Shown here piece by piece: positions 32,758 to 63,335 of a stretch of 64,000 bases of DNA. The DNA lies in the NCBI GenBank assembly GCA_043228905.1, contig JBHGNT010000015.1, positions 10,168,001 through 10,232,000 on the forward strand, in the 5' to 3' direction. Position numbers and translations under genes: made by a program. The stretch's first letter is position 1, and every line of letters starts with the position of its first letter. Below the pieces are notes generated by a model, which was given only the letters and a program-made list of their open reading frames with translations, was not told where the DNA came from and made no database searches. This stretch comes from Azolla caroliniana. Its lineage: Eukaryota; Plantae; Polypodiophyta.

Positions 32758-32760
32758 GTT

Positions 32761-36400: not shown

Positions 36401-39400
36401 TTGTTGGATGTATCGATCATACACCTCATTTGGAGCTTGGAGCCAAATGTCAAAATCAAGACCCAGTTTCGTCGTATCTACAGGGGTTGCAACGAATTCG
36501 TCCGCTTATAGGCAGCAATACCCAGGAGTGCACTCGAACGAGAGATCAGATCATGATACGTGCCCAACGAACCTCGTGGACAACCGACTGTTCCCCCAAA
36601 CCTCTAAACGTGGTAGACGATACGAGGGAAAAAAGAAAGCATTGACGATATGGTGGTGCGGGATCCTACGCAGTAATGCCTCATTAGATGACAACAGATT
36701 TGCACCGCCGTTGGTGCCGTTGCCGGGGATCGAACCCGGGTCACCCGCATGACAGGCGGGAATACTCACCACTATACTATAACGACATGCTCGTATTGGA
36801 AGTATCGATCATACAGCTCCTTTGGAGCATGGACCCGAATGTCAAAATCCAGACCTGGTTTCGTCGTATCTTCAGGGGTTGCAACGAATTCGTCCGCTTA
36901 TAGGCAGCAATACCCAGGAGATCACTCGAAGGTGAGATCATATGATGATATGCGCCCAACCAACCTCGTGGACAACCGACTGTCCCCCCAAGGTCCTAAA
37001 CGTGGTAGAGGATACGAGGGAAGAAAGAAAGCATTGACGATATGGTGGTGCGGAATCCTAGGCGGCAATGCCTTAGCAGATGACATCAGATTCGCACCGC
37101 CCTTGGCGCCGTTGCCGGGGATCGAACCGGGTCAACCGTGTGACAGGCGGGAATACTCACCACTATAATACAACGCCATGCTCGTGTTGGAAGTATCGAT
37201 CATACACCTCATTTGGAGCATTGACCCGAATATCAAAATCGAAACTTGATTTTGTCGTATCTGCAGGGGTTGTAATGAATTCGTCCGCTTATAGGCAGCA
37301 ATACCCAGGAGTGCACTCCAATGAGAGACCATATGATGATATGTGCCCAACCAACCTCATGGATGACCAGTTGTCCACCCAACGTCAATAACGTGGTAGA
37401 GGATACGAGGGAAGAAGGAAAGCATTGATGATATGGTGGTGCGGGATCCTAGGCGGCGATGCCTCAGTAGATGACATCAGATTCGCACCGCCCTTGGGGC
37501 CGTTGCCGGGGATCGAACCGGGTCAACCGTGTGACAGGCGGGAATACTCACCACTATAATACAACGCCATGCTCGTGTTGGAAGTATCGATCATACACCT
37601 CATTTGGAGCATTGACCCGACTATCAAAATCGAAACTTGATTTCGTCGTATCTGCAGGGGTTGTAATGAATTCGTCCGCTTATAGGCAGCAATACCCAGG
37701 AGTGCACTCCAATGAGAGACCATATGATGATATGTGCCCAACCAACCTCTTGGATGACCAGCTGTCCCCCCAAGGTCAATAACGTGGTAGAGGATACGAG
37801 GGAAGAAGGAAAGCATTGATGATATGGTGGTGCGGGATCCTAGGCGGCGATGCCTCAGTAGATGACATCAGATTCGCACCGCCCTTGGGGCCGTTGTTCG
37901 GGATCGAGCCCGGGTCACCCGCGTGACAGGCGGGAATACTCACCACTATACTACAACAACATGCTCTGGTTGGATTTATCGATCATACACCTCATTTGGA
38001 GCTTGGACCCAAATGTCAAAATCTAGACCCAGTTTCGTCGTATCTACAGGGGTTGCAACGAATTCGTCCGCTTATAGGCAGCAATACCCAAGAGTGCACT
38101 CCAACGAGAGACCATATGATGATATGTCCCATACCAACCTCATGGATGACCAGCTGTCCCCCCAAGGTCAAAAACGTGGTAGAGGATACGAGGGAAGAAG
38201 GAAAGCATTGTCGATATGGTGGTGCGGGATCCAAGCCGGCAATTCCTTAGTAGATGACATCAGATTCGCACCGCCCTTGGCGCCGTTGCCGTGGATCGAA
38301 CCGGGGTCACCCGCGTGACAGGCGGGAATACTCTCACCACTATACTACAACGAAATGCGTGGACAACCGACTGTTCCCCCAAGGTTATAAACGTGGTAGA
38401 GGATACAAGGAAAGAAGGAAAGCATTGTTGATATCGTGGTGCGGTATCCGAGGCCGCAATGCCGTAGTATATGACATCAGATTCGCACTGCCCTTGGCGC
38501 CGTTGCCGGGGATCGAACCCGAGTCAACCGTGTGACAGGCGGCAATACTCACCACTATAATACAACGCCATGCTCGTGTTGGAAGTATCGATCATACACC
38601 TCATTTGGAGCATTGACCCGAATTTCAAAATCGAAACTTGATTTCGTCGTATCTGCAAGTGTTGTAATGAATTCGTCCGCTTATAGGCAGCAATACCCAG
38701 GAGTACACTCCAATGAGACACCATATGATGATATGCGCCCAACCAACCTCATGGATGACCAGCTGTCCCCCCAAGGTCAATAACGTGGTAGAGGATACGA
38801 GGGAAGAAGGAAAGCATTGATGATATGGTGGTGCAGGATCCTAGGCGGCGATGCCTGAGTAGATGACATCAAATTCGCACCGCCCTTGGGGCCGTTGTTG
38901 GGGATCGAGCCCGGGTCACCCGCGTGACAGGCGGGAATACTCACCACTATACTACAACAACATGCTCTTGTTGGATGTATCGATCATACACCTCATTTGG
39001 AGCTTGTACCCAAATGTCAAAATCTAGACCCAGTTTCGTCGTATCTACAGGGGTTGCAACGAATTCGTCCGCTTATAGGCAGCAATACCCAAGAGTGCAC
39101 TCCAACGAGAGACCATATGATGATATGTCCCCAACCAACCTCATGGATGACCAGTTGTCCCCCCAAGGTTACGAGGGAAGAAGGAAAGCATTGTCGATAT
39201 GGTGGTGCGGGATCCAAGCCGGCAATTCCTTAGTAGATGACATCAGATTCGCACCGCCCTTGGCGCCGTTGCCGTGGATCGAACCGGGGTCACCCGCGTG
39301 ACAGGCGGGAATACTGACCAGTATACTACAACGAAATGCGTGGACAATCGACTGTTCCCCCAAAGTTATAAACGTGGTAGAGGATACAAGGAAAGAAGGA

Positions 39401-40217
39401 AAGCATTGTTGATATCGTGGTGCGGTATCCGAGGCCGCAATGCCGTAGTATATGAAATCAGATTCGCACCGCCCTTGGCACCATTGCCGGGGATTGAACC
39501 CGGGTCACCCGTGTGATAGGCGGGAATACTGCCCACTCTACTACAACGACATGCTCATGTTGGAAGTTTCGATAATACACCTCGTTTGGAGCATGGACCC
39601 GAATGTCAAAATCAAGACCCGGTTTCGTCGTATCTCCAGGGTTTGCAACGAATTCGTCCGCTTATAGGAAGCAATACCCAGGAGTGCACTCGAACGAGAG
39701 ATCATATGATGGTATGTGCCCAACCAACCTCGTGGACGACCGACGCTCCCCCCAAGGTCAAAAACAGGTTAAAGGATACGAGGGAAGAAAGAGAGCGTTG
39801 ACGAAATGGTGGTTCGGGATCCTTGGCGGCGATGCCTTAGTAGATAACATTAGATTCGCACCGTCCTTGGCGCCGTTGCCGGGGATCGAATCTGGTTAAC
39901 CCGCGTGACAGACGGGAATACTCAACACTATACTACAACGACATGCTCGTGTTGGATGTATCGATCATACACCTCCTTTGGAGCATGGACCCAAATGTCA
40001 AAATCTAGACCCGGTTTCGTCGTATCTATAGGGGTCGCAACGAAATCGTCCGCTTATAGGCAGCAATACCCAAGAGTGCACTCCAACGAGAGACCATATG
40101 ATGATATGTGCCCAACCAACCTCGTGGATGACCAGTTGTCCCCCAAGGTCAAAAACATGGTAGAGGATACGAGGGAAGAAGGAAAGCATTTATGATATGG
40201 TAGAGCGGGATCCTAAG

Positions 40218-40289
40218 CGCCGTTGCCGGGGATCGAACCCGGGTCACCCGCGTGACAGGCGGGAATACTCACCACTATACTACAACGAC
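40218..40289 (-). tRNA. trnD-GUC: tRNA-Asp(GUC), perfect consensus
   Basis: Identical 72-mer; short monomer with downstream T5. Confidence 0.93.
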
Positions 40290-43200
40290 ATGCTCGTGTT
40301 GGATGTATCCATCATACACCACATTTGGAGCATGGACCCGAATGTCAAAATCCAGACCCGGTTTCGTCGTATCTGTAGGGGTTGCAACGAAATCGTCCGC
40401 TTATAGGCAGCAATACCCAGGAGTGCACTCCAACGAGAGACCATATAATGATATGTGCCCAACCAACCTCGTGGATGACCAGCTATCCCCCCAAGGTTAA
40501 TAACGTGGTAGAGGATACGAGGGAAGAAGGAAAGCATTGATGATATGGTGGTGCGGGATCCTAGGCGGCGATGCCTCAGTAGATGACATCAGATTCGCAC
40601 CGCCTTGGGGACGTTGTTGGGGATCGAGCCCGGGTCACCCGCGTGACAGGCGGGAATACTCAACATTATACTACAACAACATGCTCTTGTTGGATGTATC
40701 GATCATACACCTCATTTGGAGCTTGGACCCAAATGTCAAAATCTAGACCCAATTTCGTCGTATCTACAGGGGTTGCAACGAATTCGTCTGCTTATAGGCA
40801 ACAATACTCAAGAGTGCACTCGAACGAAAGACCATATGATGATATGTGCCCAACCAACCTCTTGGATGACCAGCTGTCCCCCCAAGGTAAAAAACGTGGT
40901 AGAGGATACGCGGGAAGAAGGAAAGCATTGCTGATATGGTAGCGCGGGATCCTAAGCGCCGTTTTGAGGGATCGAACCCGGGTCACCCGCGTGACAGGCG
41001 GGAATATTCACAACTATACTACAACGACATGCTCGTGTTGGATGTATCGATCATAGACCTCATTTGGAACATGGACTCGAATGTAAAAATCCAGACCCGG
41101 TTTCGTCGTATCTGTAGGGGTTGCAACGAAATCGTCCGCTTATAGGCAGCAATACCCAGGAGTGCACTCCAACGAGAGACCATATAATGATATGTGCCCA
41201 ACCAACCTCGTAGATGACCAGCTGTCCCCCCAAGGTCAATAACGTGGTAGAGGATACGAGGGAAGAAGGAAGGCATTGATGATATGGTGGTGCAGGATCC
41301 TAGGCGGCGATGCCTCAGTAGATGACATCAAATTCGCACCGCCCTTGGGGCCGTTGTTGGGGATCGAGCCCGGGTCACCCGCGTGACAGGCGGGAATACT
41401 CAACATTATATTACAACAACATGCTCTTGTTGGATGTATCGATCATACACCTCATTTGGAGCTTGGACCCAAATGTCAAAATCTAGACACAGTTTCGTCG
41501 TATCTACAGGGGTTGCAACGAATTCGTCTGCTTATAGGCACCAATACTCAAGAGTGCACTCGAACGAAAGACCATATGATGATATGTGCCCAACCAACCT
41601 CTTGGATGACCAGCTGTCCCCCCAAGGTAAAAAACGTGGTAGAGGATACGAGGGAAGAAGGAAAGCATTGCTGATATGGTAGCGCGGGATCCTAAGCGCC
41701 GTTTTGAGGGATTGAACCCGGGTCACCCGCGTGACAGGCGGGAATATTCACAACTATACTACAACGACATGCTCTTGTTGGATGTATCGATCATAGACCT
41801 CATTTGGAACATGGACTCGAATGTAAAAATCTAGACCCGGTTTCGTCGTATCTGTAGGGGTTGCAACGAAATCGTCCGCTTATAGGCAGCAATACCCAGG
41901 AGTGCACTCCAACGAGAGACCATATAATGATATGTGCCCAACCAACCTCGTAGATGACCAGCTGTCCCCCCAAGGTCAATAACGTGGTAGAGGATACGAG
42001 GGAAGAAGGAAGGCATTGATGATATGGTGGTGCAGGATCCTAGGCGGCGATGCCTCAGTAGATGACATCAAATTCGCACCGCCCTTGGGGCCGTTGTTGG
42101 GGATCGAGCCCGGGTCACCCGCGTGACAGGCGGGAATACTCAACATTATATTACAACAACATGCTCTTGTTGGATGTATCGATCATACACCTCATTTGGA
42201 GCTTGGACCCAAATGTCAAAATCTAGACACAGTTTCGTCGTATCTACAGGGGTTGCAACGAATTCGTCTGCTTATAGGCAACAATACTCAAGAGTGCACT
42301 CTAACGAAAGACCATATGATGATATGTGCCCAACCAACCTCTTGGATGACCAGCTGTCCCCCCAAGGTAAAAAACGTGGTAGAGGATACGAGGGAAGAAG
42401 GAAAGCATTGCTGATATGGTAGCGCGGGATCCTAAGCGCCGTTGTGAGGGATCGAACCCGGGTCACCCGCGTGACAGGCGGGAATATTCACAACTATACT
42501 ACAACGACATGCTCTTGTTGGATGTATCGATCATAGACCTCATTTGGAACATGGACTCGAATGTAAAAATCCAGACCCGGTTTCGTCGTATCTGTAGGGG
42601 TTGCAACGAAATCGTCCGCTTATAGGCAGCAATACCCAGGAGTGCACTCCAACGAGAGACCATATAATGATATGTGCCCAACCAACCTAGTGGATGACCA
42701 GCTGTCCCCCCAAGGTCAATAACGTGGTAGAGGATACGAGGGAAGAAGGAAAGCATTGATGATATGGTGGTGCGGGATCCTAGGCGGCGATGCCTCAGTA
42801 GATGAAATCAGATTCGCACCGCCCTTGGGGTCGTTGTTGGGGATCGAGCCCGGGTCACCTGCGTGACAAGCGGGAATACTCAACACTATACTACAACAAG
42901 ATGCTCTTGTTGGATGTATCGATCATACACCTCATTTGGAGCTTGGACCCAAATGTCAAAATCTAGACCCAGTTTCGTCGTATCTACAGGGGTTGCAACG
43001 AATTCGTCCGCTTATAAGTAGTAATACCCAAGAGTGCACTCCAACGAGAGACCATATGATGATATGTGCCCAACCAACCTCGTGGATGGACCAGTTGTCC
43101 CCCCAAGGTCAAAAACGTGGTAGAGGATACGAGGGAAGAAGGAAAGCATTGCTGATATGGTAGAGCGGGATCCTTAGCGCCGTTGCCGGGAATCGAACCC

Positions 43201-43850
43201 GGGTCACCCGCGTGACAGGCGGGAATACTCACCACTATACTACAACGACATGCTCGTGTTGGATGTATCGATCACACACCTCAGTTGGAGCATGGACCCG
43301 AATGTCAAAATCCAGACCTGGTTTCGTGGTATCTGTAGGGGTTGCAACGAAATCGTCCGCTTATAGGCAGCAATACCCAGGAGTGCACTCCAACGAGAGA
43401 CCATATAATGATATGTCCCCAACCAACCTCGTGGATGACCAGATGTCCCCCCAAGGTCAATAACGTGGTAGAGGATACGAGGGAAGAAGGAAAGTATTGA
43501 TGATGTAGTGGTGCGGGATCCTAGGCGGCGATGCCTCAGTAGATGACATCAGATTCGCACCGCCCTTGGGGCCGTTGTTCGGGATCGAGCCCGGGTCACC
43601 CGCGTGACAGGCGGGAATACTCAACACTATACTACAACAACATGCTTTTGTTGGATGTATCGATCATACACGTCATTTGGAGCTTGGACCCAAATGTCAA
43701 AATCTAGACCCAGTTTCGTCGTATCTACAGGGGTTGCAACGAATTCGTCCGCTTATAAGTAGTAATACCCAAGACTGCACTCCAACGAGAGACCATATGA
43801 TGATATGTGCCCAACCAACCTCGTGGATGACCAGCTGTCCCCGCAAGGTC

Positions 43851-43855
43851 AAAAA
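43851..43855 (-). terminator. Putative Pol III oligo-T terminator (representative of short monomers)
   Basis: TTTTT on the tRNA strand, 62 nt 3' of the tRNA. It is TTATT at the same position in the long monomers of the dimer region. Confidence 0.6.
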
Positions 43856-43917
43856 CGTGGTAGAGGATACGAGGGAAGAAGGAAAGCATTGCTGATATGG
43901 TAGAGCGGGATCCTGAG

Positions 43918-43989
43918 CGCCGTTGCCGGGGATCGAACCCGGGTCACCCGCGTGACAGGCGGGAATACTCACCACTATACTACAACGAC
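43918..43989 (-). tRNA. trnD-GUC: tRNA-Asp(GUC), perfect consensus
   Basis: Identical 72-mer; short monomer, T5 at 43851-43855. Confidence 0.93.
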
Positions 43990-46833
43990 CTGCTCGTGTT
44001 GGATGTATCGATCACACACCTCATTTGGAGCATGGACCCGAATGACAAAATCCAGACCCGGTTTCGTCGTATCTGTAGGGGTTGCAACGAAATCGTCCGC
44101 TTATAGGCAGCAATACCCAGGAGTGCACTCCAACGAGAGACCATATAATGATATGTGCCCAACCAACCTCGTGGATGACCAGCTGTCCCCGCAAGGTCAA
44201 AAACGTGGTAGAGGATACGAGAGAAGAAGGAAAGCATTGATGATATGGTAGACCGGGATCCTTAGCGCCGTTGCCGGGGATCGAACCTGGGTCACCCGCG
44301 TGACAGGCGGGAATACTCACCACTATACTACAACGACATGCTCGTGTTGGATGTATCGATCACACACCTCATTTGGAGCATGGACCCGAATGACAAAATC
44401 CAGACCCGGTTTCGTCGTATCTGTAGGGGTTGCAACCAAATCGTCTGCTTATAGGCAGCAATACCCAGGAATGCACTCCAACGAGAGACCATATAATGAT
44501 ATGTGCCCAACCAACCTCGTGGATGACCAGCTGTCCCCCCAAGGTCAATAACGTGGTAGAGGATACGAGGGAAGAAGGAAAGCATTGATGATATGGTGGT
44601 GCGGGATCCTAGGCGGCGATGCCTCAGTAGATGAAATCAGATTAGCACCGCACTTGGGGCCGTTGTTGGGGATCGAGCCCGGGTCACCCGCGTGACAGGC
44701 GGGAATACTCAACACTATACTACAACAACATGCTCTTGTTGGATATATCGATCATACACCTCATTTGGAGCTTGGACCCAAATGTCAAAATCTAGACCCA
44801 GTTTCGTCGTATCTACAGGGGTTGCAACGAATTCGTCCGCTTATAAGTAGTAATACCCAAGACTGCACTCCAACGAGAGACCATATAATGATATGTGCCC
44901 AACCAACCTCGTGGATGACCAGCTGTCCCCCCAAGGTCAAAAACGTGGTAGAGGATACGAGGGAAGAAGGAAAGCATTGCTGATATGTTAGAGCGGGATC
45001 CTTAGCGCCGTTGCCGGGGATCGAACCCGGGTCACCCGCGTGACAGGCGGGAATACTCAACACTATACTACAACGACATGCTCGTGTTGGATGTATCGAT
45101 CACACACCTCAGTTGGAGCATGGACCCGAATGTCAAAATCCAGACCTGGTTTCGTTGTATCTGTAGGGGTTGCAACGAAATCGTCCGCTTATAGGCAGCA
45201 ATACCCAGGAGTGCACTCCAACGAGAGACCATATAATGATATGTCCCCAACCAACCTCGTGGATGACCAGATGTCCCCCCAAGGTAAATAACGTGGTAGA
45301 GGATACGAGGGAAGAAGGAAAGTATTGATGATATAGTGGTGCGGGATCCTAGGCGGCGATGCCTCAGTAGATGACATCAGATTCGCACCGCCCTTGGGGC
45401 CGTTGTTCGGGATCGAGCCCGGGTCACCCGCGTGACAGGCGGGAATACTCAACACTATACTACAACAACATGCTCTTGTTGGATGTATCGATCATACACC
45501 TCATTTGGAGCTTGGACCCAAATGTCAAAATCTAGACCCAGTTTCGTCGTATCTACAGGGGTTGCAACGAATTCGTCCGCTTATAAGTAGTAATACCCAA
45601 GACTGCACTCCAACGAGAGACCATATGATGATATGTGCCCAACCAACCTCGTGGATGACCAGCTGTCCCCGCAAGGTCAAAAACGTGGTAGAGGATACGA
45701 GGGAAGAAGGAAAGCATTGCTGATATGGTAGAGCGGGATCCTGAGCGCCGTTGCCGGGGATCGAACCCGGGTCACCCGCGTGACACGCGGGAATACTCAC
45801 CACTATACTACAACGACCTGCTCGTGTTGGATGTATCGATCACACACCTCATTTGGAGCATGGACCCGAATGACAAAATCCAGACCCGGTTTCGTCGTAT
45901 CTGTAGGGGTTGCAACGAAATCGTCCGCTTATAGGCAGCAATACCCAGGAGTGCACTCCAACGAGAGACCATATAATGATATGTGCCCAACCAACCTCGT
46001 GGATGACCAGCTGTCCCCGCAAGGTCAAAAACGTGGTAGAGGATACGAGAGAAGAAGGAAAGCATTGATGATATGGTAGACCGGGATCCTTAGCGCCGTT
46101 GCCGGGGATCGAACCTGGGTCACCCGCGTGACAGGCGGGAATACTCACCACTATACTACAACGACATGCTCGTGTTGGATGTATCGATCACACACCTCAT
46201 TTGGAGCATGGACCCGAATGACAAAATCCAGACCCGGTTTCGTCGTATCTGTAGGGGTTGCAACGAAATCGTCCGCTTATAGGCAGCAATACCCAGGAGT
46301 GCACTCCAACGAGAGACCATATAATGATATGTGCCCAACCAACCTCGTGGATGACCAGCTGTCCCCCCAAGGTCAATAACGTGGTAGAGGATACGAGGGA
46401 AGAAGGAAAGCATTGATGATATGGTGGTGCGGGATCCTAGGCGGCGATGCCTCAGTAGATGAAATCAGATTAGCACCGCACTTGGGGCCGTTGTTGGGGA
46501 TCGAGCCCGGGTCACCCGCGTGACAGGCGGCAATACTCAACACTATACTACAACAACATGCTCTTGTTGGATATATCGATCATACACCTCATTTGGAGCT
46601 TGGACCCAAATGTCAAAATTTAGACCCAGTTTCGTCGTATCTACAGGGGTTGCAACGAATTCGTCCGCTTATAAGTAGTAATACCCAAGACTACACTCCA
46701 ACGAGAGACCATATGATGATATGTGCCCCACCAACCTCGTGGATGACCAGCTGTCCCCCCAAGGTCAAAAACGTGGTAGAGGATACGAGGGAAGAAGGAA
46801 AGCATTGCTGATATGGTAGAGCGGGATCCTTAG

Positions 46834-46905
46834 CGCCGTTGCCGGGGATCGAACCCGGGTCACCCGCGTGACAGGCGGGAATACTCACCACTATACTACA
46901 ACGAC
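46834..46905 (-). tRNA. trnD-GUC: tRNA-Asp(GUC), perfect consensus
   Basis: Identical 72-mer; short monomer. Confidence 0.93.
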
Positions 46906-47965
46906 ATGCTCGTGTTGGGTGTATCGATCACACACCTCATTTGGAGCAGGGACCCGAATGTCAAAATCCAGACCCGGTTTCGTCGTATCTGTAGGGGTTG
47001 CAACGAAATCGTCCGCTTATAGGCAGCAATACCCAGGAGTGCACTCCAACGAGAGACCATATAATGATATGTGCCCAACCAACCTCGTGGATGACCAGCT
47101 GTCCCCCCAAGGTCAATAACGTGGTAGAGGATACGAGGGAAGAAGGAAAGTATTGATGATATAGTGGTGCGGGATCCTAGGCGGCGATGCCTCAGTAGAT
47201 GACATCAGATTCGCACCGCCCTTGGGGTCGTTGTTGGGGATCGAGCCCGGGTCACCTGCGTGACAAGCGGGAATACTCAACACTATACTACAACAAGATG
47301 CTCTTGTTGGATGTATCGATCATACACCTCATTTGGAGCTTGGACCCAAATGTCAAAATCTAGACCCAGTTTCGTCGTATCTACAGGGGTTGCAACGAAT
47401 TCGTCCGCTTATAAGTAGTAATACCCAAGACTGCACTCCAACGAGAGACCATATGATGATATGTGCCCAACCAACCTCGTGGATGACCAGCTGTCCCCGC
47501 AAGGTCAAAAACGTGGTAGAGGATACGAGGGAAGAAGGAAAGCATTGCTGATATGGTAGAGCGGGATCCTGAGCTCCGTTGCCGGGGATCGAACCCGGGT
47601 CACCCGCGTGACAGGCGGGAATACTCACCACTATACTACAACGACCTGCTCGTGTTGGATGTATCGATCACACACCTCATTTGGAGCATGGACCTGAATG
47701 ACAAAATCCAGACCCGGTTTCGTCGTATCTGTAGGGGTTGCAACGAAATCGTCCGCTTATAGGCAGCAATACCCAGGAGTGCACTCCAACGAGAGACCAT
47801 ATAATGATATGTGCCCAACCAACCTCGTCGATGACCAGCTGTCCCCCCAAGGTCAATAACGTGGTAGAGGATACGAGGGAAGAAGGAAAGCATAGATGAT
47901 ATGGTGGTGCGGGATCCTAGGCGGCGATGCCTCAGTAGATGAAATCAGATTCGCACCGCACTTGG

Positions 47966-48037
47966 GGCCGTTGTTGGGGATCGAGCCCGGGTCACCCGCG
48001 TGACAGGCGGGAATACTCAACACTATACTACAACAAC
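47966..48037 (-). pseudogene. Representative tRNA-Asp pseudogene of the long monomer in the dimer region
   Basis: Carries C3T, D-loop GG to GT, T54C (GGGCTCGATC), T-stem GG to AA and discriminator G to C. Confidence 0.85.
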
Positions 48038-48313
48038 ATGCTCTTGTTGGATATATCGATCATACACCTCATTTGGAGCTTGGACCCAAATGTCAAAATC
48101 TAGACCCAGTTTCGTCGTATCTACAGGGGTTGCAACGAATTCGTCCGCTTATAAGTAGTAATACCCAAGACTGCACTCCAACGAGAGACCATATGATGAT
48201 ATGTGCCCAACCAACCTCGTGGATGACCAGCTGTCCCCCCAAGGTCAAAAATGTGGTAGAGGATACGAGGGAAGAAGGAAAGCATTGCTGATATGGTAGA
48301 GCGGGATCCTGAG

Positions 48314-48385
48314 CGCCGTTGCCGGGGATCGAACCCGGGTCACCCGCGTGACAGGCGGGAATACTCACCACTATACTACAACGAC
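48314..48385 (-). tRNA. trnD-GUC: tRNA-Asp(GUC), perfect consensus
   Basis: Identical 72-mer; short monomer. Confidence 0.93.
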
Positions 48386-49053
48386 ATGCTCGTGTTGGAT
48401 GTATCGATCACACACCTCATTTGGAGCATGGACCCGAATGACAAAATCCAGACCCGGTTTCGTCGTATCTGTAGGGGTTGCAACGAAATCGTCCGCTTAT
48501 AGGCAGCAATACCCAGGAGTGCACTCCAACAAGAGACCATATAATGATATGTGCCCAACCAACCTCGTGGATGACCAGCTGTCCCCCCAAGGTCAATACC
48601 GTGGTAGAGGATACGAGGGAAGAAGGAAAGCATTGATGATATGGTGGTGCGGGATCCTAGGCGGCGATGCCTCAGTAGATGAAATCAGATTCGCACCGCA
48701 CTTGGGGCCGTTGTTGGGGATCGAGCCCGGGTCACCCGCGTGACAGGCGGGAATACTCAACACTATACTACAACAACATGCTCTTGTTGGATATATCGAT
48801 CATACACCTCATTTGGAGCTTGGACCCAAATGTCAAAATCTAGACCCAGTTTCGTCGTATCTACAGGGGTTGCAACGAATTCGTCCGCTTATAAGTAGTA
48901 ATACCCAAGACTGCACTCCAACGAGAGACCATATGATGATATGTGCCCAACCAACCTCGTGGATGACCAGCTGTCCCCGCAAGGTCAAAAACGTGGTAGA
49001 GGATACGAGGGAAGAAGGAAAGCATTGCTGATATGGTAGAGCGGGATCCTGAG

Positions 49054-49125
49054 CGCCGTTGCCGGGGATCGAACCCGGGTCACCCGCGTGACAGGCGGGA
49101 ATACTCACCACTATACTACAACGAC
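49054..49125 (-). tRNA. trnD-GUC: tRNA-Asp(GUC), perfect consensus
   Basis: Identical 72-mer; short monomer. Confidence 0.93.
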
Positions 49126-49793
49126 CTGCTCGTGTTGGATGTATCGATCACACACCTCATTTGGAGCATGGACCCGAATGACAAAATCCAGACCCGGTTT
49201 CGTCGTATCTGTAGGGGTTGCAACGAAATCGTCCGCTTATAGGCAGCAATACCCAGGAGTGCACTCCAACGAGAGACCATATAATGATATGTGCCCAACC
49301 AACCTCGTGGATGACCAGCTGTCCCCGCAAGGTCAAAAACGTGGTAGAGGATACGAGAGAAGAAGGAAAGCATTGATGATATGGTGGTGCGGGATCCTAG
49401 GCGGCGATGCCTCAGTAGATGAAATCAGATTCGCACCGCACTTGGGGCCGTTGTTGGGGATCGAGCCCGGGTCACCCGCGTGACAGGCGGGAATACTCAA
49501 CACTATACTACAACAACATGCTCTTGTTGGATATATCGATCATACACCTCATTTGGAGCTTGGACCCAAATGTCAAAATCTAGACCCAGTTTCGTCGTAT
49601 CTACAGGGGTTGCAACGAATTCGTCCGCTTATAAGTAGTAATACCGAAGACTGCACTCCAACGAGAGACCATATGATGATATGTGCCCAACCAACCTCGT
49701 GGATGACCAGCTGTCCCCGCAAGGTCAAAAACGTGGTAGAGGATACGAGGGAAGAAGGAAAGCATTGCTGATATGGTAGAGCGGGATCCTGAG

Positions 49794-49865
49794 CGCCGTT
49801 GCCGGGGATCGAACCCGGGTCACCCGCGTGACAGGCGGGAATACTCACCACTATACTACAACGAC
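49794..49865 (-). tRNA. trnD-GUC: tRNA-Asp(GUC), perfect consensus
   Basis: Identical 72-mer; short monomer. Confidence 0.93.
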
Positions 49866-50881
49866 CTGCTCGTGTTGGATGTATCGATCACACACCTCAT
49901 TTGGAGCATGGACCCGAATGACAAAATCCAGACCCGGTTTCGTCGTATCTGTAGGGGTTGCAACGAAATCGTCCGCTTATAGGCAGCAATACCCAGGAGT
50001 GCACTCCAACGAGAGACCATATAATGATATGTGCCCAACCAACCTCGTGGATGACCAGCTGTCCCCGCAAGGTCAAAAACGTGGTAGAGGATACGAGAGA
50101 AGAAGGAAAGCATTGATGATATGGTAGAGCGGGATCCTTAGCGCCGTTGCCGGGGATCGAACCTGGGTCACCCGCGTGACAGGCGGGAATACTCACCACT
50201 ATACTACAACGACATGCTCGTGTTGGATGTATCGATCACACACCTCATTTGGAGCATGGACCCGAATGACAAAATCCAGACCCGGTTTCGTCGTATCTGT
50301 AGGGGTTGCAACGAAATCGTCCGCTTATAGGCAGCAATACCCAGGAGTGCACTCCAACGAGAGACCATATAATGATATGTGCCCAACCAACCTCGTGGAT
50401 GACCAGCTGTCCCCCCAAGGTCAATAACGTGGTAGAGGATACGAGGGAAGAAGGAAAGCATTGATGATATGGTGGTGCGGGATCCTAGGCGGCGATGCCT
50501 CAGTAGATGAAATCAGATTAGCACCGCACTTGGGGCCGTTGTTGGGGATCGAGCCCGGGTCACCCGCGTGACAGGCGGCAATACTCAACACTATACTACA
50601 ACAACATGCTCTTGTTGGATATATCGATCATACACCTCATTTGGAGCTTGGACCCAAATGTCAAAATCTAGACCCAGTTTCGTCGTATCTACAGGGGTTG
50701 CAACGAATTCGTCCGCTTATAAGTAGTAATACCCAAGACTACACTCCAACGAGAGACCATATGATGATATGTGCCCCACCAACCTCGTGGATGACCAGCT
50801 GTCCCCCCAAGGTCAAAAACGTGGTAGAGGATACGAGGGAAGAAGGAAAGCATTGCTGATATGGTAGAGCGGGATCCTTAG

Positions 50882-50953
50882 CGCCGTTGCCGGGGATCGA
50901 ACCCGGGTCACCCGCGTGACAGGCGGGAATACTCACCACTATACTACAACGAC
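50882..50953 (-). tRNA. trnD-GUC: tRNA-Asp(GUC), perfect consensus
   Basis: Identical 72-mer; short monomer. Confidence 0.93.
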
Positions 50954-52360
50954 ATGCTCGTGTTGGATGTATCGATCACACACCTCATTTGGAGCAGGGA
51001 CCCGAATGTCAAAATCCAGACCCGGTTTCGTCGTATCTGTAGGGGTTGCAACGAAATCGTCCGCTTATAGGCAGCAATACCCAGGAGTGCACTCCAACGA
51101 GAGACCATATAATGATATGTGCCCAACCAACCTCGTGGATGACCAGCTGTCCCCCCAAGGTCAATAACGTGGTAGAGGATACGAGGGAAGAAGGAAAGTA
51201 TTGATGATATAGTGGTGCGGGATCCTAGGCGGCGATGCCTCAGTAGATGACATCAGATTCGCACCGCCCTTGGGGTCGTTGTTGGGGATCGAGCCCGGGT
51301 CACCTGCGTGACAAGCGGGAATACTCAACACTATACTACAACAAGATGCTCTTGTTGGATGTATCGATCATACACCTCATTTGGAGCTTGGACCCAAATG
51401 TCAAAATATAGACCCAGTTTCGTCGTATCTACAGGGGTTGCAACGAATTCGTCCGCTTATAAGTAGTAATACCCAAGACTGCACTCCAATGAGAGACCAT
51501 ATGATGATATGTGCCCAACCAACCTCGTGGATGACCAGCTGTCCCCGCAAGGTCAAAAACGTGGTAGAGGATACGAGGGAAGAAGGAAAGCATTGCTGAT
51601 ATGGTAGAGCGGGATCCTGAGCTCTGTTGCCGGGGATCGAACCCGGGTCACCCGCGTGACAGGCGGGAATACTCACCACTATACTACAACGACCTGCTCG
51701 TGTTGGATGTATCGATCACACACCTCATTTGGAGCATGGACCTGAATGACAAAATCCAGACCCGGTTTCGTCGTATCTGTAGGGGTTGCAACGAAATCGT
51801 CCGCTTATAGGCAGCAATACCCAGGAGTGCACTCCAACGAGAGACCATATAATGATATTGCCCAACCAACCTCGTCGATGACCAGCTGTCCCCCCAAGGT
51901 CAATAACGTGGTAGAGGATACGAGGGAAGAAGGAAAGCATAGATGATATGGTGGTGCGGGATCCTAGGCGGCGATGCCTCAGTAGATGAAATCAGATTCG
52001 CACCGCACTTGGGGCCGTTGTTGGGGATCGAGCCCGGGTCACCCGCGTGACAGGCGGGAATACTCAACACTATACTACAACAACATGCTCTTGTTGGATA
52101 TATCGATCATACACCTCATTTGGAGCTTGGACCCAAATGTCAAAATCTAGACCCAGTTTCGTCGTATCTACAGGGGTTGCAACGAATTCGTCCGCTTATA
52201 AGTAGTAATACCCAAGACTGCACTCCAACGAGAGACCATATGATGATATGTGCCCAACCAACCTCGTGGATGACCAGCTGTCCCCCCAAGGTCAAAAACG
52301 TGGTAGAGGATACGAGGGAAGAAGGAAAGCATTGCTGATATGGTAGAGCGGGATCCTTAG

Positions 52361-52432
52361 CGCCGTTGCCGGGGATCGAACCCGGGTCACCCGCGTGACA
52401 GGCGGGAATACTCACCACTATACTACAACGAC
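52361..52432 (-). tRNA. trnD-GUC: tRNA-Asp(GUC), perfect consensus
   Basis: Identical 72-mer; short monomer. Confidence 0.93.
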
Positions 52433-53100
52433 ATGCTCGTGTTGGATGTATCGATCACACACCTCAGTTGGAGCATGGACCCGAATGTCAAAATCCAGAC
52501 CTGGTTTCGTTGTATCTGTAGGGGTTGCAACGAAATCGTCCGCTTATAGGCAGCAATACCCAGGAGTGCACTCCAACGAGAGACCATATAATGATATGTC
52601 CCCAACCAACCTCGTGGATGAACAGATGTCCCCCCAAGGTCAATAACGTGGTAGAGGATACGAGGGAAGAAGGAAAGTATTGATGATATAGTGGTGCGGG
52701 ATCCTAGGCGGCGATGCCTCAGTAGATGACATCAGATTCGCACCGCCCTTGGGGCCGTTGTTGGGGATCGAGCCCGGGTCACCCGCGTGACAGGCGGGAA
52801 TACTCAACACTATACTACAACAACATGCTTTTGTTGGATGTATCGATCATACACCTCATTTGGAGCTTGGACCCAAATGTCAAAATCTAGACCCAGTTTC
52901 GTCGTATCTACAGGGGTTGCAACGAATTCGTCCGCTTATAAGTAGTAATACCCAAGACTGCACTCCAACGAGAGACCATATGATGATATGTGCCCAACCA
53001 ACCTCGTGGATGACCAGCTGTCCCCGCAAGGTCAAAAACGTGGTAGAGGATACGAGGGAAGAAGGAAAGCATTGCTGATATGGTAGAGCGGGATCCTGAG

Positions 53101-53172
53101 CGCCGTTGCCGGGGATCGAACCCGGGTCACCCGCGTGACAGGCGGGAATACTCACCACTATACTACAACGAC
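53101..53172 (-). tRNA. trnD-GUC: tRNA-Asp(GUC), perfect consensus
   Basis: Identical 72-mer; short monomer. Confidence 0.93.
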
Positions 53173-54569
53173 ATGCTCGTGTTGGATGTATCGATCACAC
53201 ACCTCATTTGGAGCATGGACCCGAATGACAAAATCCAGACCCGGTTTCGTCGTATCTGTAGGGGTTGCAACGAAATCGTCCGCTTATAGGCAGCAATACC
53301 CAGGAGTGCACTCCAACAAGAGACCATATAATGATATGTGCCCAACCAACCTCGTGGATGACCAGCTGTCCCCCCAAGGTCAATACCGTGGTAGAGGATA
53401 CGAGGGAAGAAGGAAAGCATTGATGATATGGTGGTGCGGGATCCTAGGCGGCGATGCCTCAGTAGATGAAATCAGATTCGCACCGCACTTGGGGCCGTTG
53501 TTGGGGATCGAGCCCGGGTCACCCGCGTGACAGGCGGGAATACTCAACACTATACTACAACAACATGCTCTTGTTGGATATATCGATCATACACCTCATT
53601 TGGAGCTTGGACCCAAATGTCAAAATCTAGACCCAGTTTCGTCGTATCTACAGGGGTTGCAACGAATTCGTCTGCTTATAGGCAGCAAAACCCAAGAGTG
53701 CACTCCAACGAGAGACCATATGATGATATATGCCCAACCAACCTCGTGGATGACCAGCTGTCCCCCGAAGGTCAAAAACGTGGTAGAGGATACGAGGGAA
53801 GAGGGAAAGCATTGCTGATATGATAGAGGGGGATCCTAAGCGCCGTTGCCATGTATCGAACCCGGGTCACCCGCGTGACAGGCGGGATTACTCACCACTA
53901 TACTACAAGGACATGCTCGTGTTGGATGTATCGATCACACACCTCATTTGGAGCATGGACCCGAATGTCAAAATCCAGACCCGGTTTCGTCGTATCTGTA
54001 GGGGTTGCAACGAAAGCGTCCGCTTATAGGCAGCAATACCCAGGACTGCACTCCAACGAGAGACCATCTAATGATATGTGCCCAACCAACCTCGTAGATG
54101 ACCAGTTGTCCCCCCAAGGTCCTAAACGTGGTAGAGGATACGAGGGAAGAAAGAAAGCATTGATGATATGGTGTTGCGGGATCCTAGGCGGCGATGCCTC
54201 AGTAGATGACATCAGATTCGCACCGCCCTTGGGGCAGTTGTTGGGGATCGAGCCCGAGTCACCCGCGTGACAGGCGGGAATACTCACCTCTATACTACAA
54301 CAACATGCTCTTGTTGGATGTATCGATCATACACCTCATTTGGAGCTTGGACCCAAATGTCAAAATCAAGACCCAGTTTCGTCGTATCAACAGGGGTTGC
54401 AACGAATTCGTCTACTTATAGGCAGCAATACTCAAGAGTGCACTCCAACGAAAGACCATATGATGTTATGTGCCCACCCAACCTCGTGGATGACCAGCTG
54501 TCCCCCCAAGGTAAGAGGATACGAGGGAAGAAGGAAAGCATTGCTGATATGGTAGAGCGGGATCCTGAG

Positions 54570-54641
54570 CGCCGTTGCCGGGGATCGAACCCGGGTCACC
54601 CGCGTGACAGGCGGGAATACTCACCACTATACTACAACGAC
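54570..54641 (-). tRNA. trnD-GUC: tRNA-Asp(GUC), perfect consensus
   Basis: Identical 72-mer; 337-bp monomer in which an 11-bp deletion removes the T5. Confidence 0.9.
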
Positions 54642-56778
54642 CTGCTCGTGTTGGATGTATCGATCACACACCTCATTTGGAGCATGGACCCGAATCACAA
54701 AATCCAAACCCGGTTTCGTCGTATCTGTAGGGGTTGCAACGAAATCGTCCGCTTATAGGCAGCAATACCCAGGAGTGCACTCCAACGAGAGACCATATAA
54801 TGATATGTGCCCAACCAACCTCGTCGATGACCAGCTGTCCCCCCAAGGTCAATACCGTGGTAGAGGATACGAGGGAAGAAGGAAAGCATTGATGATATGG
54901 TGGTGCGGGATCCTAGGCGGCGATGCCTCAGTAGATGAAATCAGATTCGCACCGCACTTGGGGCCGTTGTTCGGGATCGAGCCCGGGTCACCCGCGTGAC
55001 AGGCGGGAATACTCAACAATATACTACAACAACATGCTCTTGTTGGATGTATCGATCATACACCTCATTTGGAGCTTGCACCCAAATGTCAAAATCTAGA
55101 CCCAGTTTCGTCGTATCTACAGGGGTTGCAACGAATTCGTCCGCTTATAAGTAGTAATACCCAAGACTGCACTCCAACGAGAGACCATATGATGATATGT
55201 GCCCCACCAACCTCGTGGATGACCAGCTGTCCCCCCAAGGTCAAAAACGTGGTAGAGGATACGAGGGAAGAAGGAAAGCATTGCTGATATGGTAGAGCGG
55301 GATCCTTAGCGCCGTTGCCGGGGATCGAACCCGGGTCACCCGCGTGACAGGCGGGAATACTCACCACTATACTAGAACGACATGCTCGTGTTGGATGTAT
55401 CGATCACACACCTCATTTGGAGCATGGACCCGAATGACAAAATCCAGACCCGGTTTCGTCGTATCTGTAGGGGTTGCAACGAAATCGTCCGCTTATAGGC
55501 AGCAATACCCAGGAGTGCACTCCAACAAGAGACCATATAATGATATGTGCCCAACCAACCTCGTGGATGACCAGCTGTCCCCCCAAGGTCAATACCGTGG
55601 TAGAGGATACGAGGGAAGAAGGGAAGCATTGATGATATGGTGGTGCGGGATCCTAGGCGGCGATGCCTCAGTAGATGAAATCAAATTCGCACCGCACTTG
55701 GGGCCGTTGTTGGGGATCGAGCCCGGGTCACCCACGTGACAGGCGGGAATACTCAACACTATACTACAACAACATGCTCTTGTTGGATATATCGATCATA
55801 CACCTCATTTGGAGCTTGGACCCAAATGTCAAAATCTAGACCCAGTTTCGTCGTATCTACAGGGGTTGCAACGAATTCGTCTGCTTATAGGCAGCAAAAC
55901 CCAAGAGTGCACTCCAACGAGAGACCATATGATGATATATGCCCAACCAACCTCGTGGATGACCAGCTGTCCCCCCAAGGTCAAAAACGTGGTAGAGGAT
56001 ACGAGGGAAGAGGGAAAGCATTGCTGATATGATAGAGGGGGATCCTAAGCGCCGTTGCCATGTATCGAACCCGGGTCACCCGCGTAACAGGCGGGATTAC
56101 TCACCACTATACTACAAGGACATGCTCGTGTTGGATGTATCGATCACACACCTCATTTGGAGCATGGACCCGAATGTCAAAATCCAGACCCGGTTTCGTC
56201 GTATCTGTAGGGGTTGCAACGAAAGCGTCCGCTTATAGGCAGCAATACGCAGGACTGCACTCCAACGAGAGACCATCTAATGATATGTGCCCAACCAACC
56301 TCGTAGATGACCAGCTGTCCCCCCAAGGTCCTAAACGTGGTAGAGGATACGAGGGAAGAAAGAAAGCATTGATGATATGGTGTTGCGGGATCCTAGGCGG
56401 CGATGCCTCAGTAGATGACATCAGATTCGCACCGCCCTTGGGGCAGTTGTTGGGGATCGAGCCCGAGTCACCCGTGTGACAGGCGGGAATACTCACCTCT
56501 ATACTACAACAACATGCTCTTGTTGGATGTATCGATCATACACCTCATTTGGAGCTTGGACCCAAATGTCAAAATCAAGACCCAGTTTCGTCGTATCAAC
56601 AGGGGTTGCAACGAATTCGTCTACTTATAGGCAGCAATACTCAAGAGTGCACTCCAACGAAAGACCATATGATGTTATGTGCCCACCCAACCTCGTGGAT
56701 GACCAGCTGTCCCCCCAAGGTAAGAGGATACGAGGGAAGAAGGAAAGCATTGCTGATATGGTAGAGCGGGATCCTGAG

Positions 56779-56850
56779 CGCCGTTGCCGGGGATCGAACC
56801 CGGGTCACCCGCGTGACAGGCGGGAATACTCACCACTATACTACAACGAC
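56779..56850 (-). tRNA. trnD-GUC: tRNA-Asp(GUC), perfect consensus
   Basis: Identical 72-mer; 337-bp monomer. Confidence 0.9.
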
Positions 56851-57570
56851 CTGCTCGTGTTGGATGTATCGATCACACACCTCATTTGGAGCATGGACCC
56901 GAATGACCAAATCCAGACCCGGTTTCGTCGTATCTGTAGGGGTTGCAACGAAATCGTCCGCTTATAGGCAGCAATACCCAGGAGTGCACTCCAACGAGAG
57001 ACCATATAATGTTATGTGCCCAACCAACCTCGTCGATGACCAGCTGTCCCCCCAAGGTCAATAACGTGGTAGAGGATACGAGGGAAGAAGGAAAGCATTG
57101 CTGATATGGTAGCGCGGGATCCTAAGCGTCGTTGCCGGGGATCGAACCCGGGTCACCCGCGTGACAGGCGGGAATATTCACCACTATACTACAACGACAT
57201 GCTCGTGTTGGATGTATCGATCATAGACGTCATTTGGAACATGGACTCGAATGTCAAAATCCAGACCCGGTTTTGTCGTATCTGTAGGGGTTGCAAGGAA
57301 ATCGTCCGCTTATAGGCAGCAATACCCAGGAGTGCACTCCAACGAGAGACCATATTATGATATGTGCCCAACCAACCTCGTGGATGACCAGCTGTCCCCC
57401 CAAGGTCAATAACGTGGTAGAGGATACGAGGGAAGAAGGAAAGCATTGATGATATGCTGGTGCGGGATCTTAGGCGGCGATGCCTCAGTAGATGACATCA
57501 GGCTCGCACCGCCCTTGGGGCCATTGTTGGGGATCGAGCCCGGGTCACCCGCGTGACAGGCGGGAATACT

Positions 57571-57862
57571 TGTTGGAGACAATGTCGTCTTTGCGGAAGA
57601 TCTTGAAGCATTCGATAGCTGCTGAATACCTGCGTATGACAGTTTCTAGGTCGTTGCACAGAGAGAGAGAGAGAGAGAGAGACAAAGAGGCACAAAAGAC
57701 ACTCTATTTCTTAAAGCAATAATACAACAGCCAACCTTACAAAAAGGTTACAAGGTCACTATATATAGTGACCGACTTAGGGCAACTACCCTTTATGCTA
57801 ATTACATAAATGTACCAAAACGGGATAGTGTGAATACGTCCATTATACACATGTATTCGACA
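57571..57862 (-). repeat. 3' LTR of Copia B
   Basis: Matches 62743-63034. The PPT GGGGGAG is adjacent at 57863-57869. Confidence 0.95.
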
Positions 57863-58055
57863 CTCCCCCGTAATGGGCGTATACATGGGTTATCTAAGAT
57901 TACAGGTATAGACTTAGGTTCTCGGACATATCAGCTTTGTTCGAGTCGGCAGGATCCGAAGGCAGAAGACCGAACTGGTCGGGTCGGAAGAGTTGAAGCC
58001 GATCATTAAGGAACTGATGTCGGTTGTCGGGAACCATCCTGCTCTGTGTCCGGCT

Positions 58056-62072: not shown

Positions 62073-62728
62073 ATTCGGTTTCGGTTGACGAAGCTCGGTT
62101 CGGAGTTGACTACGAGCCTTGTTGGAGTGCAGCCGGTTGGCTCACCCGATATCGCTCTAGTCGGATTCGAACCCGAGTCGGTTCGGCTTCGGAACTTGCT
62201 CGAATTGACTCCGGTAGCTCGAGGGACAGAACCGACTGGTCTTCCCGAATGTTGCCGAGTCGGAGTGAGCCCGGTTCGCTTCGGATATATATGCCGAATA
62301 CCGATTACTGAAACCGATTATCTGGACCGATTCTGCTTCGGGTGACTGCAGCGACGAGAGAGATGAATCTAACTGATCCTCTCGAGTGTCGATCAGCCTG
62401 ATGAAGCACGAATTTGGGGTTGTTGTCTTGAGACCGATCTGCACCGAGTGGTTACAACGAGCGGCGTTTGATGACCTCTTCGGATGCCGTTTAACCGAAT
62501 GGAGCACGAATCGTGTCAATGTTGCACAAGGGGATTTCACCTCGAGCGGTTACAATCACAAGGGACGGAGTACAACCTGCTGGCTTACTCCAAACAAAGA
62601 TGATCTAACGCGATGAGATGCAAACCTGGGTTTTTTTTTTTTCCTTCTTCTCTCTTCTTCGAATGACGCAGGAAACCGAATGCTGAGACGACGGCCGACA
62701 GCGGATTGAGGGACCGACTACTGTGCAC

Positions 62729-62740
62729 GCTCTGATACCA
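62729..62740 (-). promoter_or_regulatory. Primer binding site (initiator tRNA-Met) of Copia B
   Basis: TGGTATCAGAGC, 2 nt inside the 5' LTR boundary. Confidence 0.92.
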
Positions 62741-62742
62741 GA

Positions 62743-63034: not shown

Positions 63035-63335
63035 ATACTCACCACTATACTACAAGACCATGCTCTTGTTGGATGTATTGATCATACACCTCATTTGGAG
63101 CATGGACCAAAATGTCAAAATCTAGACCCAGTTTCGTCGTATCTACAGGGGTTGCAACGAATTCGTCTGCTAATAGGCAGCAATACTCAAGAGTGCACTC
63201 CAACGAAAGACCATATGATGATATGTGCCAAATCAACCTCGTGGATGACCAGCTGTCCCCCCAAGGTAAAAAACGTGGTAGAGGATACAAGGGAAGAAGG
63301 AAAGCATTGCTGATATGGTAGTGCGGGATCCTAAG

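Follow-up and report, generated by a model that had tools for sequence, protein, structure and literature searches.

A dimeric higher-order repeat array occupies positions 40140 to 57570 (minus strand) of a 64-kb stretch of Azolla caroliniana DNA (hereafter the window). Its 740-bp unit pairs a short monomer, often carrying a perfect tRNA-Asp gene, with a long monomer carrying a tRNA-Asp pseudogene. We consider it probable that the array is a young higher-order repeat of a satellite built from a tRNA-Asp(GUC) gene, and that its intact tRNAs stem from recent copying and not from selection on each copy.

Structure of the array

ARAGORN predicts 60 tRNA-Asp genes in the 64-kb window, all on the minus strand, and an anchored search identifies 82 tRNA-like units between 22.0 and 63.8 kb. 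When monomer length is measured from position 1 of a tRNA to the next downstream tRNA, the interval 40140-57600 contains 48 minus-strand tRNA-Asp(GTC) monomers. Twenty-six are short (348 bp, n = 22; 337 bp, n = 2; 347 and 349 bp, n = 1 each) and 22 are long (392 bp, n = 20; 391 bp, n = 2). Short and long monomers follow each other in strict alternation, broken by four short-short joins (43989/44337, 45817/46165, 49865/50213 and 56850/57198), and no long-long join occurs among the 48 monomers. The best autocorrelation lag is 740 bp. Mean identity is 95.1% between short monomers and 96.3% between long monomers, versus 90.6% between short and long ones. The two types thus alternate, and members of the same type resemble each other more than they resemble their neighbours, as is characteristic of a higher-order repeat. 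The alternation of 348- and 392-bp monomers from about 40.2 kb had been described in a first-pass annotation of this DNA, whose observation proved correct in each detail that we examined. We also share its caveat that the dimers have a common ancestry: the alternating structure is far beyond chance, yet descended from very few founder units. With 13-14 tRNA-Asp units per 5 kb on a single (minus) strand, the array is a plant tandem tRNA gene cluster as defined by at least five tRNA genes of restricted isotypes, head to tail, within 5 kb (PMC13437025).

A representative short monomer of 348 bp (48778 to 49125, minus strand) contains a perfect tRNA-Asp(GTC) at 49054-49125, scoring 60.3 bits, and a T5 run at 48987-48991, that is at +63. 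The adjacent long monomer of 392 bp (48386 to 48777, minus strand) contains a pseudo-tRNA at 48706-48777, scoring 38.8 bits, with the changes C3T, D-loop GT, T54C, G64A/G65A and G73C. It keeps an encoded CCA and 44 bp missing from the short units (about 48662-48705), and its T-run at about 48595-48599 is broken.

The tRNA-Asp units of the window are interrupted twice by Ty1/copia LTR retrotransposons on the minus strand. In one (27987 to 33414) the polyprotein ORF, of 1332 aa, is intact, and the two LTRs, each about 650 bp long, show about 3 differences. The other (57571 to 63034) has 292-bp LTRs, a 5-bp target duplication (ATACT) and an ORF in two pieces, and it landed in the tRNA body of a long monomer. 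Past this second element the dimer array resumes in phase (63035 to 64000, minus strand), with a short unit containing a perfect tRNA (63336-63407) and a long unit (63799).

Intact and degraded tRNA bodies

There are 14 perfect 72-nt tRNAs in the window: 11 in short monomers of the dimeric stretch, one in the short unit 63407 and two in units of the old 392-bp type (24096 and 26055). Twelve of the 14 are therefore in short monomers, in agreement with the first-pass count, and within 40.2-57.6 kb the proportion is 11 of 11. These 11 copies are identical to the array consensus tRNA, fold into the canonical cloverleaf and score 60.3 bits against the Rfam tRNA model. G73 and the anticodon GUC are identity elements of tRNA-Asp; both are intact in the perfect short copies, as are the A and B boxes when compared with their consensus. 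The other short monomers have already diverged: 15 of the 26 short tRNAs are mutated, with changes in stems, in the B box and even in the anticodon (GTT in 56121), and their scores range from 34 to 58 bits.

The long copies score at most 38.8 bits against the same model, except 54304 (41.5 bits), and their standard cloverleaf is unstable (-2.3 vs -11.7 kcal/mol). The changes that the first-pass annotation had listed as shared by the long monomers are indeed there: T54C, the T-stem GG to AA change and G73C in 22 of 22, and D-loop GG to GT in 19 of 22. C3T is present in 21 of 22. The first three are seen in none of the 26 short monomers. Between them the shared changes affect the A box, the B box, the T stem and an identity element. 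The long copies would not be expected to give a chargeable tRNA-Asp. C3T together with the GG to AA change creates a 7-bp acceptor stem in a shifted register, which we judged to be a by-product, the T arm being left with 3 bp. A CCA triplet follows the discriminator base in all 22 long units and in most old units, the chance of such a triplet being 1 in 64. An encoded CCA hinders eukaryotic tRNase Z.

Terminator run and flanking sequences

A T5 or T6 run is found at +63 in 23 of the 26 short monomers and is absent at the corresponding +107 in 21 of the 22 long ones. The first run of at least four T is at +63 in short units, at +260 in most long units and at +205 in the 337-bp units. The first-pass annotation had pointed to four exceptions, near 49335, 54510, 56720 and 57060; all are real and located where it placed them. 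The long unit 49517 retains T5, an 11-bp deletion removed the run from the two units of 337 bp (54641 and 56850), and the short unit 57198 reads TTATT. The 337-bp variant (54305 to 54641, minus strand; duplicated at 56514-56850) carries a perfect tRNA beside the deleted +63 run. Since two perfect tRNAs (54641 and 56850) have lost their T-run, conservation of the tRNA does not go hand in hand with that of the run.

In work on Arabidopsis, positions -50 to +25 were taken as the promoter and terminator window (PMC7544208). A terminator near the 3' end, within the approximately 25 nt usual in plants, is not found in the array, where the nearest is at +63. Such a distant terminator does not exclude transcription. 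The 50 bases upstream of the short tRNA are 50% A+T, with CAA at -12 to -10, and no TATA-like motif is present from -50 to -1. The CpG observed/expected ratio of about 0.9-1.0 in the array shows no strong mark of long-term methylation decay.

Equal divergence of tRNA and spacer

The first-pass annotation had proposed one active gene per 740 bp, its partner being degraded to a spacer, and had named equal divergence of tRNA body and spacer in short monomers among the results that would speak against this view. Equal divergence is what we obtained. Counting independent changes by the Fitch method, short monomers exhibit 22 changes over 72 tRNA sites (0.306 per site) and 91 over 276 spacer sites (0.330 per site; p = 0.82), a modest number of events (n = 113) on a tree of repeats, which may be distorted by gene conversion. 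When distinct derived alleles are counted without a tree, the tRNA has 20/72 and the spacer 79/276. In the youngest short clade the values are 6/72 (0.083) and 19/276 (0.069). Long monomers exhibit 0.306 changes per site in the pseudo-tRNA and 0.206 in the spacer (p = 0.13). No deficit in the tRNA appears when CpG and non-CpG classes are analysed separately, and a constraint of 50% or more on the short tRNA is rejected (p about 0.01). The tRNA body of the short units thus shows no sign of being conserved by purifying selection more than its flanks are.

Of the proposed dimer, the pairing of an intact-type monomer with a pseudogene (damaged in both promoter boxes, the T stem and the discriminator) is retained, and the functional half is not supported, given the equal rates and the T-run lost beside two perfect tRNAs. 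Equal rates do not prove that the array is dead, as a redundant set of genes can be useful without constraint on each copy.

A decayed second tRNA in the spacer

Every spacer contains a decayed second tRNA-Asp, or "ghost". In the representative short monomer it lies at 48853 to 48924 (minus strand), with a T4 run at +15, and its long-monomer counterpart is at 48461-48530. The local alignment of the tRNA with the spacer scores 38, versus 20.7 +/- 3.3 for shuffled sequences (none of 500 reached 38), and 47 of 65 aligned columns are identical. Homology outside the two tRNAs themselves is unsupported: extending the alignment of main and ghost copies into their flanks adds only 1 score point. The ghost is evidence of an earlier round, in this tRNA-Asp satellite family, in which two tRNAs were paired and one of them then decayed. 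In the monomer consensus the main tRNA stayed perfect during the decay of the ghost; the progenitor was therefore constrained at one time.

Origin and growth of the dimer

An older, diverged array of 392-bp tRNA-Asp units lies on the same strand. Its left part (22004 to 27986) has a mean pairwise identity of 86.8%, and its right part (33415 to 40139) includes, according to the tRNA census, an eight-monomer higher-order repeat of 3133 bp. The short monomer corresponds to the 392-bp ancestral unit, its tRNA intact, from which the 44 bp immediately following the discriminator base have been lost. This deletion lies between two copies of CGCC (microhomology); it took out the encoded CCA and moved the old T5 run from +107 to +63. 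A proto-dimer is found in the older array (27083 to 27821, minus strand), where a 347-bp unit (tRNA 27358-27429) with the 44-bp deletion in unmutated form stands beside a long-type unit (tRNA 27750-27821).

The long lineage is a separate one. C3T, T54C, G64A, G65A and G73C, that is the long-type marks except the D-loop change, are already present in the older 392-bp array, in units 27821, 34827, 36394, 37960 and 38961. The idea that the long partner was degraded within the dimer therefore has to be abandoned.

The dimer was copied in blocks of 0.74, 1.1, 1.8, 2.2 and 4.0 kb. A seven-monomer block, f g F i G f H in our notation (45470 to 48037, minus strand), is duplicated at 49518-52084 with a lag of 4048 bp; the strings I k K l and D f g are also repeated, and near-identical runs are seen at lags of 1828, 2209, 3308 and 4048. 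Members of the main short clade are 98.5% identical.

A metagenome search with the most conserved 18-mer of the spacer returned 12 loci, 11 of them chance single hits. The sole satellite match, a locus of 1381 bp (L009), is too short for a cross-species comparison. In the literature we found no description of a fern tRNA-Asp satellite, only total tRNA gene counts for Azolla filiculoides.

A probable satellite rather than a series of maintained genes

The reading that we favour would run as follows. The repeat unit would be satellite-like DNA derived from a nuclear tRNA-Asp(GUC) gene. The short unit was made by the 44-bp microhomology deletion and paired with the pre-existing long lineage, after which blocks of 0.7-4 kb were duplicated, presumably by unequal crossing-over or replication slippage. 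Since the duplication, both tRNA types and both spacers have gathered changes at the same per-site rate. The tRNAs would owe their intactness to a founder short unit that was itself intact and to an apparently young amplification, not to selection keeping each copy. Judging from their sequence, the short copies retain their internal Pol III promoter, and in permissive chromatin a pre-tRNA ending in a 62-nt trailer could be made from them; by analogy with the tRNA gene clusters of Arabidopsis, the short copies are probably redundant and, for the most part, silent. Two young copia elements inside the array, one of them within a tRNA body, also count for this reading. Against it count the undepleted CpG, the constraint once exerted on the progenitor, and the fact that the most amplified short lineage is the one combining a perfect tRNA and a T5 run with the loss of the encoded CCA. 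Selection at the level of the array for better genes would also produce the amplification of this lineage.

That each dimer harbours one active tRNA-Asp gene (tRNA plus T5 terminator) under purifying selection, with its partner degraded to a spacer, now appears improbable. The confinement of the 11 perfect tRNAs of the stretch to short units, the T5-6 run at +63 in most of these, the CAA motif at -12, and the damaged A box, B box, T stem and G73 of long units that also lack the run would all suit such a gene. However, the short tRNA changes as fast as the spacer and the long pseudo-tRNA, a constraint of at least 50% being rejected; many of the 15 mutated short tRNAs are hit destructively, two perfect ones lack the run, the long-type marks are older than the dimer, and the terminator is far from a tRNA whose upstream region is not A+T-rich. 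Selection could instead act through array turnover on the number of intact copies, the array being a conditionally used and mostly silent stock of tRNA-Asp genes. There is a precedent in Arabidopsis: its clustered tRNA genes, though silenced, remain competent for transcription, and root tips reactivate the SYY cluster (PMC7544208, PMC12308677). The pre-eminence of the intact short lineage, a short unit freed of the CCA with its T-run nearer than in the ancestral unit, and the undepleted CpG fit this reading, which we nevertheless find doubtful: amplification was just as strong for the long pseudogene as for the short unit, and copia elements insert into tRNA bodies and persist there. A bolder version, to which we give little credence, would make the array a working and tunable tRNA-Asp stock. 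The 44-bp deletion would have made a better gene, with the CCA gone and the terminator nearer, which was preferentially amplified; release of the 62-nt trailer would yield a small RNA of defined sequence; and the recurrent pairing then decay, of the ghost and later of the long monomer, would reflect a rule of about 700 bp spacing between Pol III units.

A retroelement origin, in which the monomer came from a small retroelement or a reverse-transcribed mature tRNA and was then tandemised, the tRNA being a passenger and never a gene here, seems to us very improbable. The encoded CCA of all long and most old units points in this direction, as do the tandem Cassandra arrays known in plants including ferns (PMC7215508). 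Yet the monomer has neither LTR-like terminal repeats nor a retroelement ORF, the whole tRNA is present and not just its 3' 12-18 nt, and the decayed second tRNA with its own T4 at +15 resembles an old gene pair.

With the satellite reading preferred, the stretch illustrates a route to high tRNA counts, from tRNA gene to satellite, the intact copies having arisen as by-products when blocks were recently duplicated. Thousands of tRNA genes (about 7500) have been reported from ferns such as Azolla, a count loosely linked to fast growth (PMC13578239, PMC13437025). If the intact copies are such by-products, gene counts from tRNA scans would overstate the working repertoire of such genomes. The locus is also a clean, datable example of a higher-order repeat born from two existing monomer variants. 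Should the short units be expressed, the idea of a "silent reserve cluster" would extend from Arabidopsis to ferns.

Comparison with known repeat systems

The closest parallels are the clusters of Arabidopsis thaliana, with Ser-Tyr-Tyr units of 1.5 kb on chromosome 1, Pro units, and Cys units of 0.4 kb on chromosome 5 (PMC7544208, PMC10701932, PMC12308677). Like them, the Azolla array is compact, made of head-to-tail units with a tRNA gene of one or few isotypes, and has pseudogenes amid intact copies; in both cases repeat-rich DNA surrounds the extra copies, and at about 0.4 kb the Cys unit is close in length to the Azolla monomers. Unlike them, it is an Asp array of a fern, covers more than 35 kb in the window and continues past it, and alternates two monomer types as a dimer. 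Its T-run is at +63 and not within about 25 nt, and its upstream region is not A+T-rich. Silencing has been shown for the Arabidopsis clusters.

The higher-order repeats of alpha-satellite similarly have two diverged alternating types, higher identity within a type than between neighbours, and growth by block duplication. In dimeric alpha-satellite the CENP-B box is kept in every other monomer only, and the Azolla array likewise has its functional motif in one monomer type only. This motif is, however, a whole Pol III gene and not a protein-binding box, and we saw no sign of a centromeric role.

Tandem arrays of Cassandra TRIMs, with 5S rRNA-derived Pol III sequences, form long arrays in plants, ferns included, and resemble the Azolla array in having a sequence derived from a Pol III gene in each unit (PMC7215508); the LTRs, primer-binding site and polypurine tract of Cassandra are not seen in the 348- and 392-bp monomers. 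The human tRNA variable-number tandem repeat at 1q23.3, with 7.3-kb units (PMC4041453), is another case of tRNA genes amplified as a copy-number-variable tandem repeat. Its unit, from another kingdom, is 20 times larger than that of Azolla and comprises several tRNA genes and a CTCF site.

Results

The minus strand carries nuclear-type tRNA-Asp(GTC) units repeated head to tail in a very long array; ARAGORN called 60 of these units in the window, and a search anchored on the anticodon arm located 82 at 22.0-63.8 kb. Periods of 392 and 348 bp were detected with Tandem Repeats Finder. Letting each monomer start at tRNA position 1 and end where the next downstream tRNA begins, and naming units by the window coordinate of that position 1, we delimited 48 monomers in the stretch 40140-57600: 26 short (22 of 348 bp, two of 337 bp, one each of 347 and 349 bp) and 22 long (20 of 392 bp, two of 391 bp). 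The top self-similarity lag is 740 bp. The alternation of short and long monomers described in the first-pass annotation is broken only by four short-short joins, long-long joins being absent among the 48. Perfect tRNAs (72 nt, identical to the consensus of the array) had been assigned mostly to short monomers; all 11 in the stretch are in short units and, with short unit 63407, 12 of 14, the remaining two belonging to old 392-type units (24096 and 26055).

The two monomer types are separated by discrete marks, most of them noticed earlier. T54C, the T-stem change GG to AA and the discriminator change G73C are each present in 22/22 long units and 0/26 short units; the D-loop change GG to GT is found in 19/22 long units and C3T in 21/22. 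A run of T5 or T6 lies 63 nt 3' of the tRNA (+63) in 23/26 short units, and the matching run of the long units, at +107, is broken in 21/22. The four reported exceptions to the T-run pattern are all real: long unit 49517 retains T5, the 337-bp units 54641 and 56850 lost the run by an 11-bp deletion, and short unit 57198 reads TTATT. Against the Rfam tRNA model, perfect short copies score 60.3 bits and long copies at most 38.8 bits, except 54304 (41.5 bits). The initial observation is confirmed. In long units, for example at 48709-48777, C3T and the T-stem GG to AA change together create a perfect acceptor stem of 7 bp in a register displaced by 3 nt, and the Rfam alignment of long units follows that 69-nt register; this shifted stem is probably a by-product.

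Same-type monomers are 95-96% identical and cross-type monomers 90.6%, the contrast by which a higher-order repeat is defined. When monomers differing at no more than 3 positions are given the same label, the label strings f g F i G f H (lag 4048), I k K l (lag 2209) and D f g each occur twice. The dimer grew by block duplication, and the array is a plant tandem tRNA gene cluster that behaves like satellite DNA organized in a higher-order repeat. Our literature searches turned up no earlier account of a tRNA-Asp satellite in ferns, and nothing closer than reports of very high numbers of tRNA genes in Azolla filiculoides. The older array of 392-bp units (33579-39942) shows a 3133-bp repeat of its own, made up of eight monomers (33653 to 36786), and has variant monomers in common with the segment at 24.4-25.3 kb (24414-25271) at an offset of 10731 bp. 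It also contains half-length units of 215-217 bp at 38352/38569 and 39335/39550. A metagenome scan returned one true but short relative, contig L009 (1-1381), with four units of this satellite; one of them, of the short type and 348 bp long, shares 97.9% identity with the sub-family 44337/46165/50213, and the units after it, at spacings of 372 and 563 bp, match neither monomer type of the window.

Two Ty1/copia retrotransposons are inserted in the satellite. The one at 27987-33414 interrupts the array, and about 3 positions distinguish its LTRs (about 650 bp), indicating a very young insertion; its polyprotein is encoded by an uninterrupted gag-pol ORF of 1332 aa (28658-32656, minus strand), and the element is possibly still mobile. 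The second (57571-63034; 292-bp LTRs with one mismatch, 5-bp target duplication ATACT) landed within the tRNA body of a long unit, and its ORF is broken into two parts, of 742 and 550 aa. Past this insertion the array picks up again in phase at 63035.

The 44-bp length difference between the monomer types corresponds to a single gap in the consensus alignment, immediately 3' of the tRNA end. In 392-bp units the CGCC at the tRNA end (positions 71-73 and the first C of an encoded CCA) is repeated 44 bp downstream, and short units have one CGCC, at the junction; a microhomology deletion left this footprint. With it went the CCA encoded after the discriminator in the ancestral unit, and a pre-existing T5 run, formerly at +107, came to lie at +63. 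The least altered form of the junction is a 347-bp unit in the older array (27083-27429), and since it adjoins a long-type unit (27430-27821) the two form a proto-dimer. The idea that the partner was degraded within the dimer does not hold, because five old units (27821, 34827, 36394, 37960 and 38961) already bear the long-type marks, minus the D-loop change, and the monomer tree groups them with the long units. A CCA directly following the discriminator, unusual for a eukaryotic tRNA gene, is present in old 392-bp units and in 22/22 long units (e.g. 48703-48705), and hints that a mature tRNA or a retroelement was the source of the founder copy.

Alignment of the tRNA with the spacer consensus reveals a second, badly decayed tRNA-Asp in every monomer, at about 245-317 of the 392-bp unit (for instance 48853-48924 and 48461-48530). 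Its score is 38, compared with 20.7 +/- 3.3 for shuffled sequences, none of 500 reaching 38. Identity in young units is 47 of 65 aligned columns, and 15 nt past the end of this ghost tRNA there is a run of T4. The 392-bp monomer is thus an old tRNA pair of which one partner decayed. It follows that the progenitor once kept its main tRNA intact and not the neighbouring one, and that "intact plus decayed partner" is a recurrent outcome in this satellite family.

The divergence of tRNA body and spacer, a check proposed with the annotation, is equal in short units, a result named there as refuting its own reading. To avoid recounting inherited changes, events were counted both as distinct derived alleles per column and by the Fitch method on a tree. 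For short units the first count gives 20/72 in the tRNA versus 79/276 in the spacer (p about 1), and the second, on a maximum-likelihood tree, 22/72 (0.306 per site) versus 91/276 (0.330; p = 0.82). Fitch rates differ significantly neither at CpG sites (0.44 versus 0.41) nor at other sites (0.26 versus 0.32). Were the tRNA evolving at half the spacer rate, the probability of at least 22 of 113 events in the tRNA would be 0.01. Fitch counts are 6/72 versus 19/276 (p = 0.63) in the youngest short clade (14 units, 98.5% identical), and 22/72 (0.306) versus 66/320 (0.206; p = 0.13) in long units. Mutated short tRNAs have changes in the acceptor stem, T stem, B box and, once, the anticodon, with scores down to 34 bits, and two perfect tRNAs (units 54641 and 56850) have no T-run. 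The equal rates, the damaged short tRNAs and the perfect tRNAs lacking a T-run thus give no sign of selection on single copies or on the tRNA-terminator pair. The short-unit tRNA at 56049-56121 has the anticodon GTC changed to GTT (reading as Asn) and five other changes.

Discussion

One active gene per 740 bp with a degraded partner had been proposed. Of this, the pairing of an intact with a pseudogene unit in a dimer is confirmed, but selection maintaining an active gene in each dimer is unsupported. The intact state of the short tRNAs most likely comes instead from an intact founder and the short time since amplification.

A number of points tell against dismissing the array as dead. Short units retain the A and B boxes, G73, the GUC anticodon and a CAA motif at -12, and amplification has gone furthest in the lineage with the intact tRNA. 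Short units have also lost the encoded CCA, a feature that hinders eukaryotic tRNase Z. CpG is not depleted in the array, and equal rates are expected of highly redundant genes even where the set is used. Against a normal gene context count the sole terminator of the short units, 63 nt off, and the 50 nt upstream of the tRNA, with no TATA-like motif and an A+T content of 50%. That the array is a reserve of tRNA-Asp genes seems to us unlikely, and is suggested by analogy with the clustered tRNA genes of Arabidopsis, which are silenced by methylation although all cis elements are present, and among which the Ser-Tyr-Tyr cluster regains activity in root tips (PMC7544208, PMC12308677).
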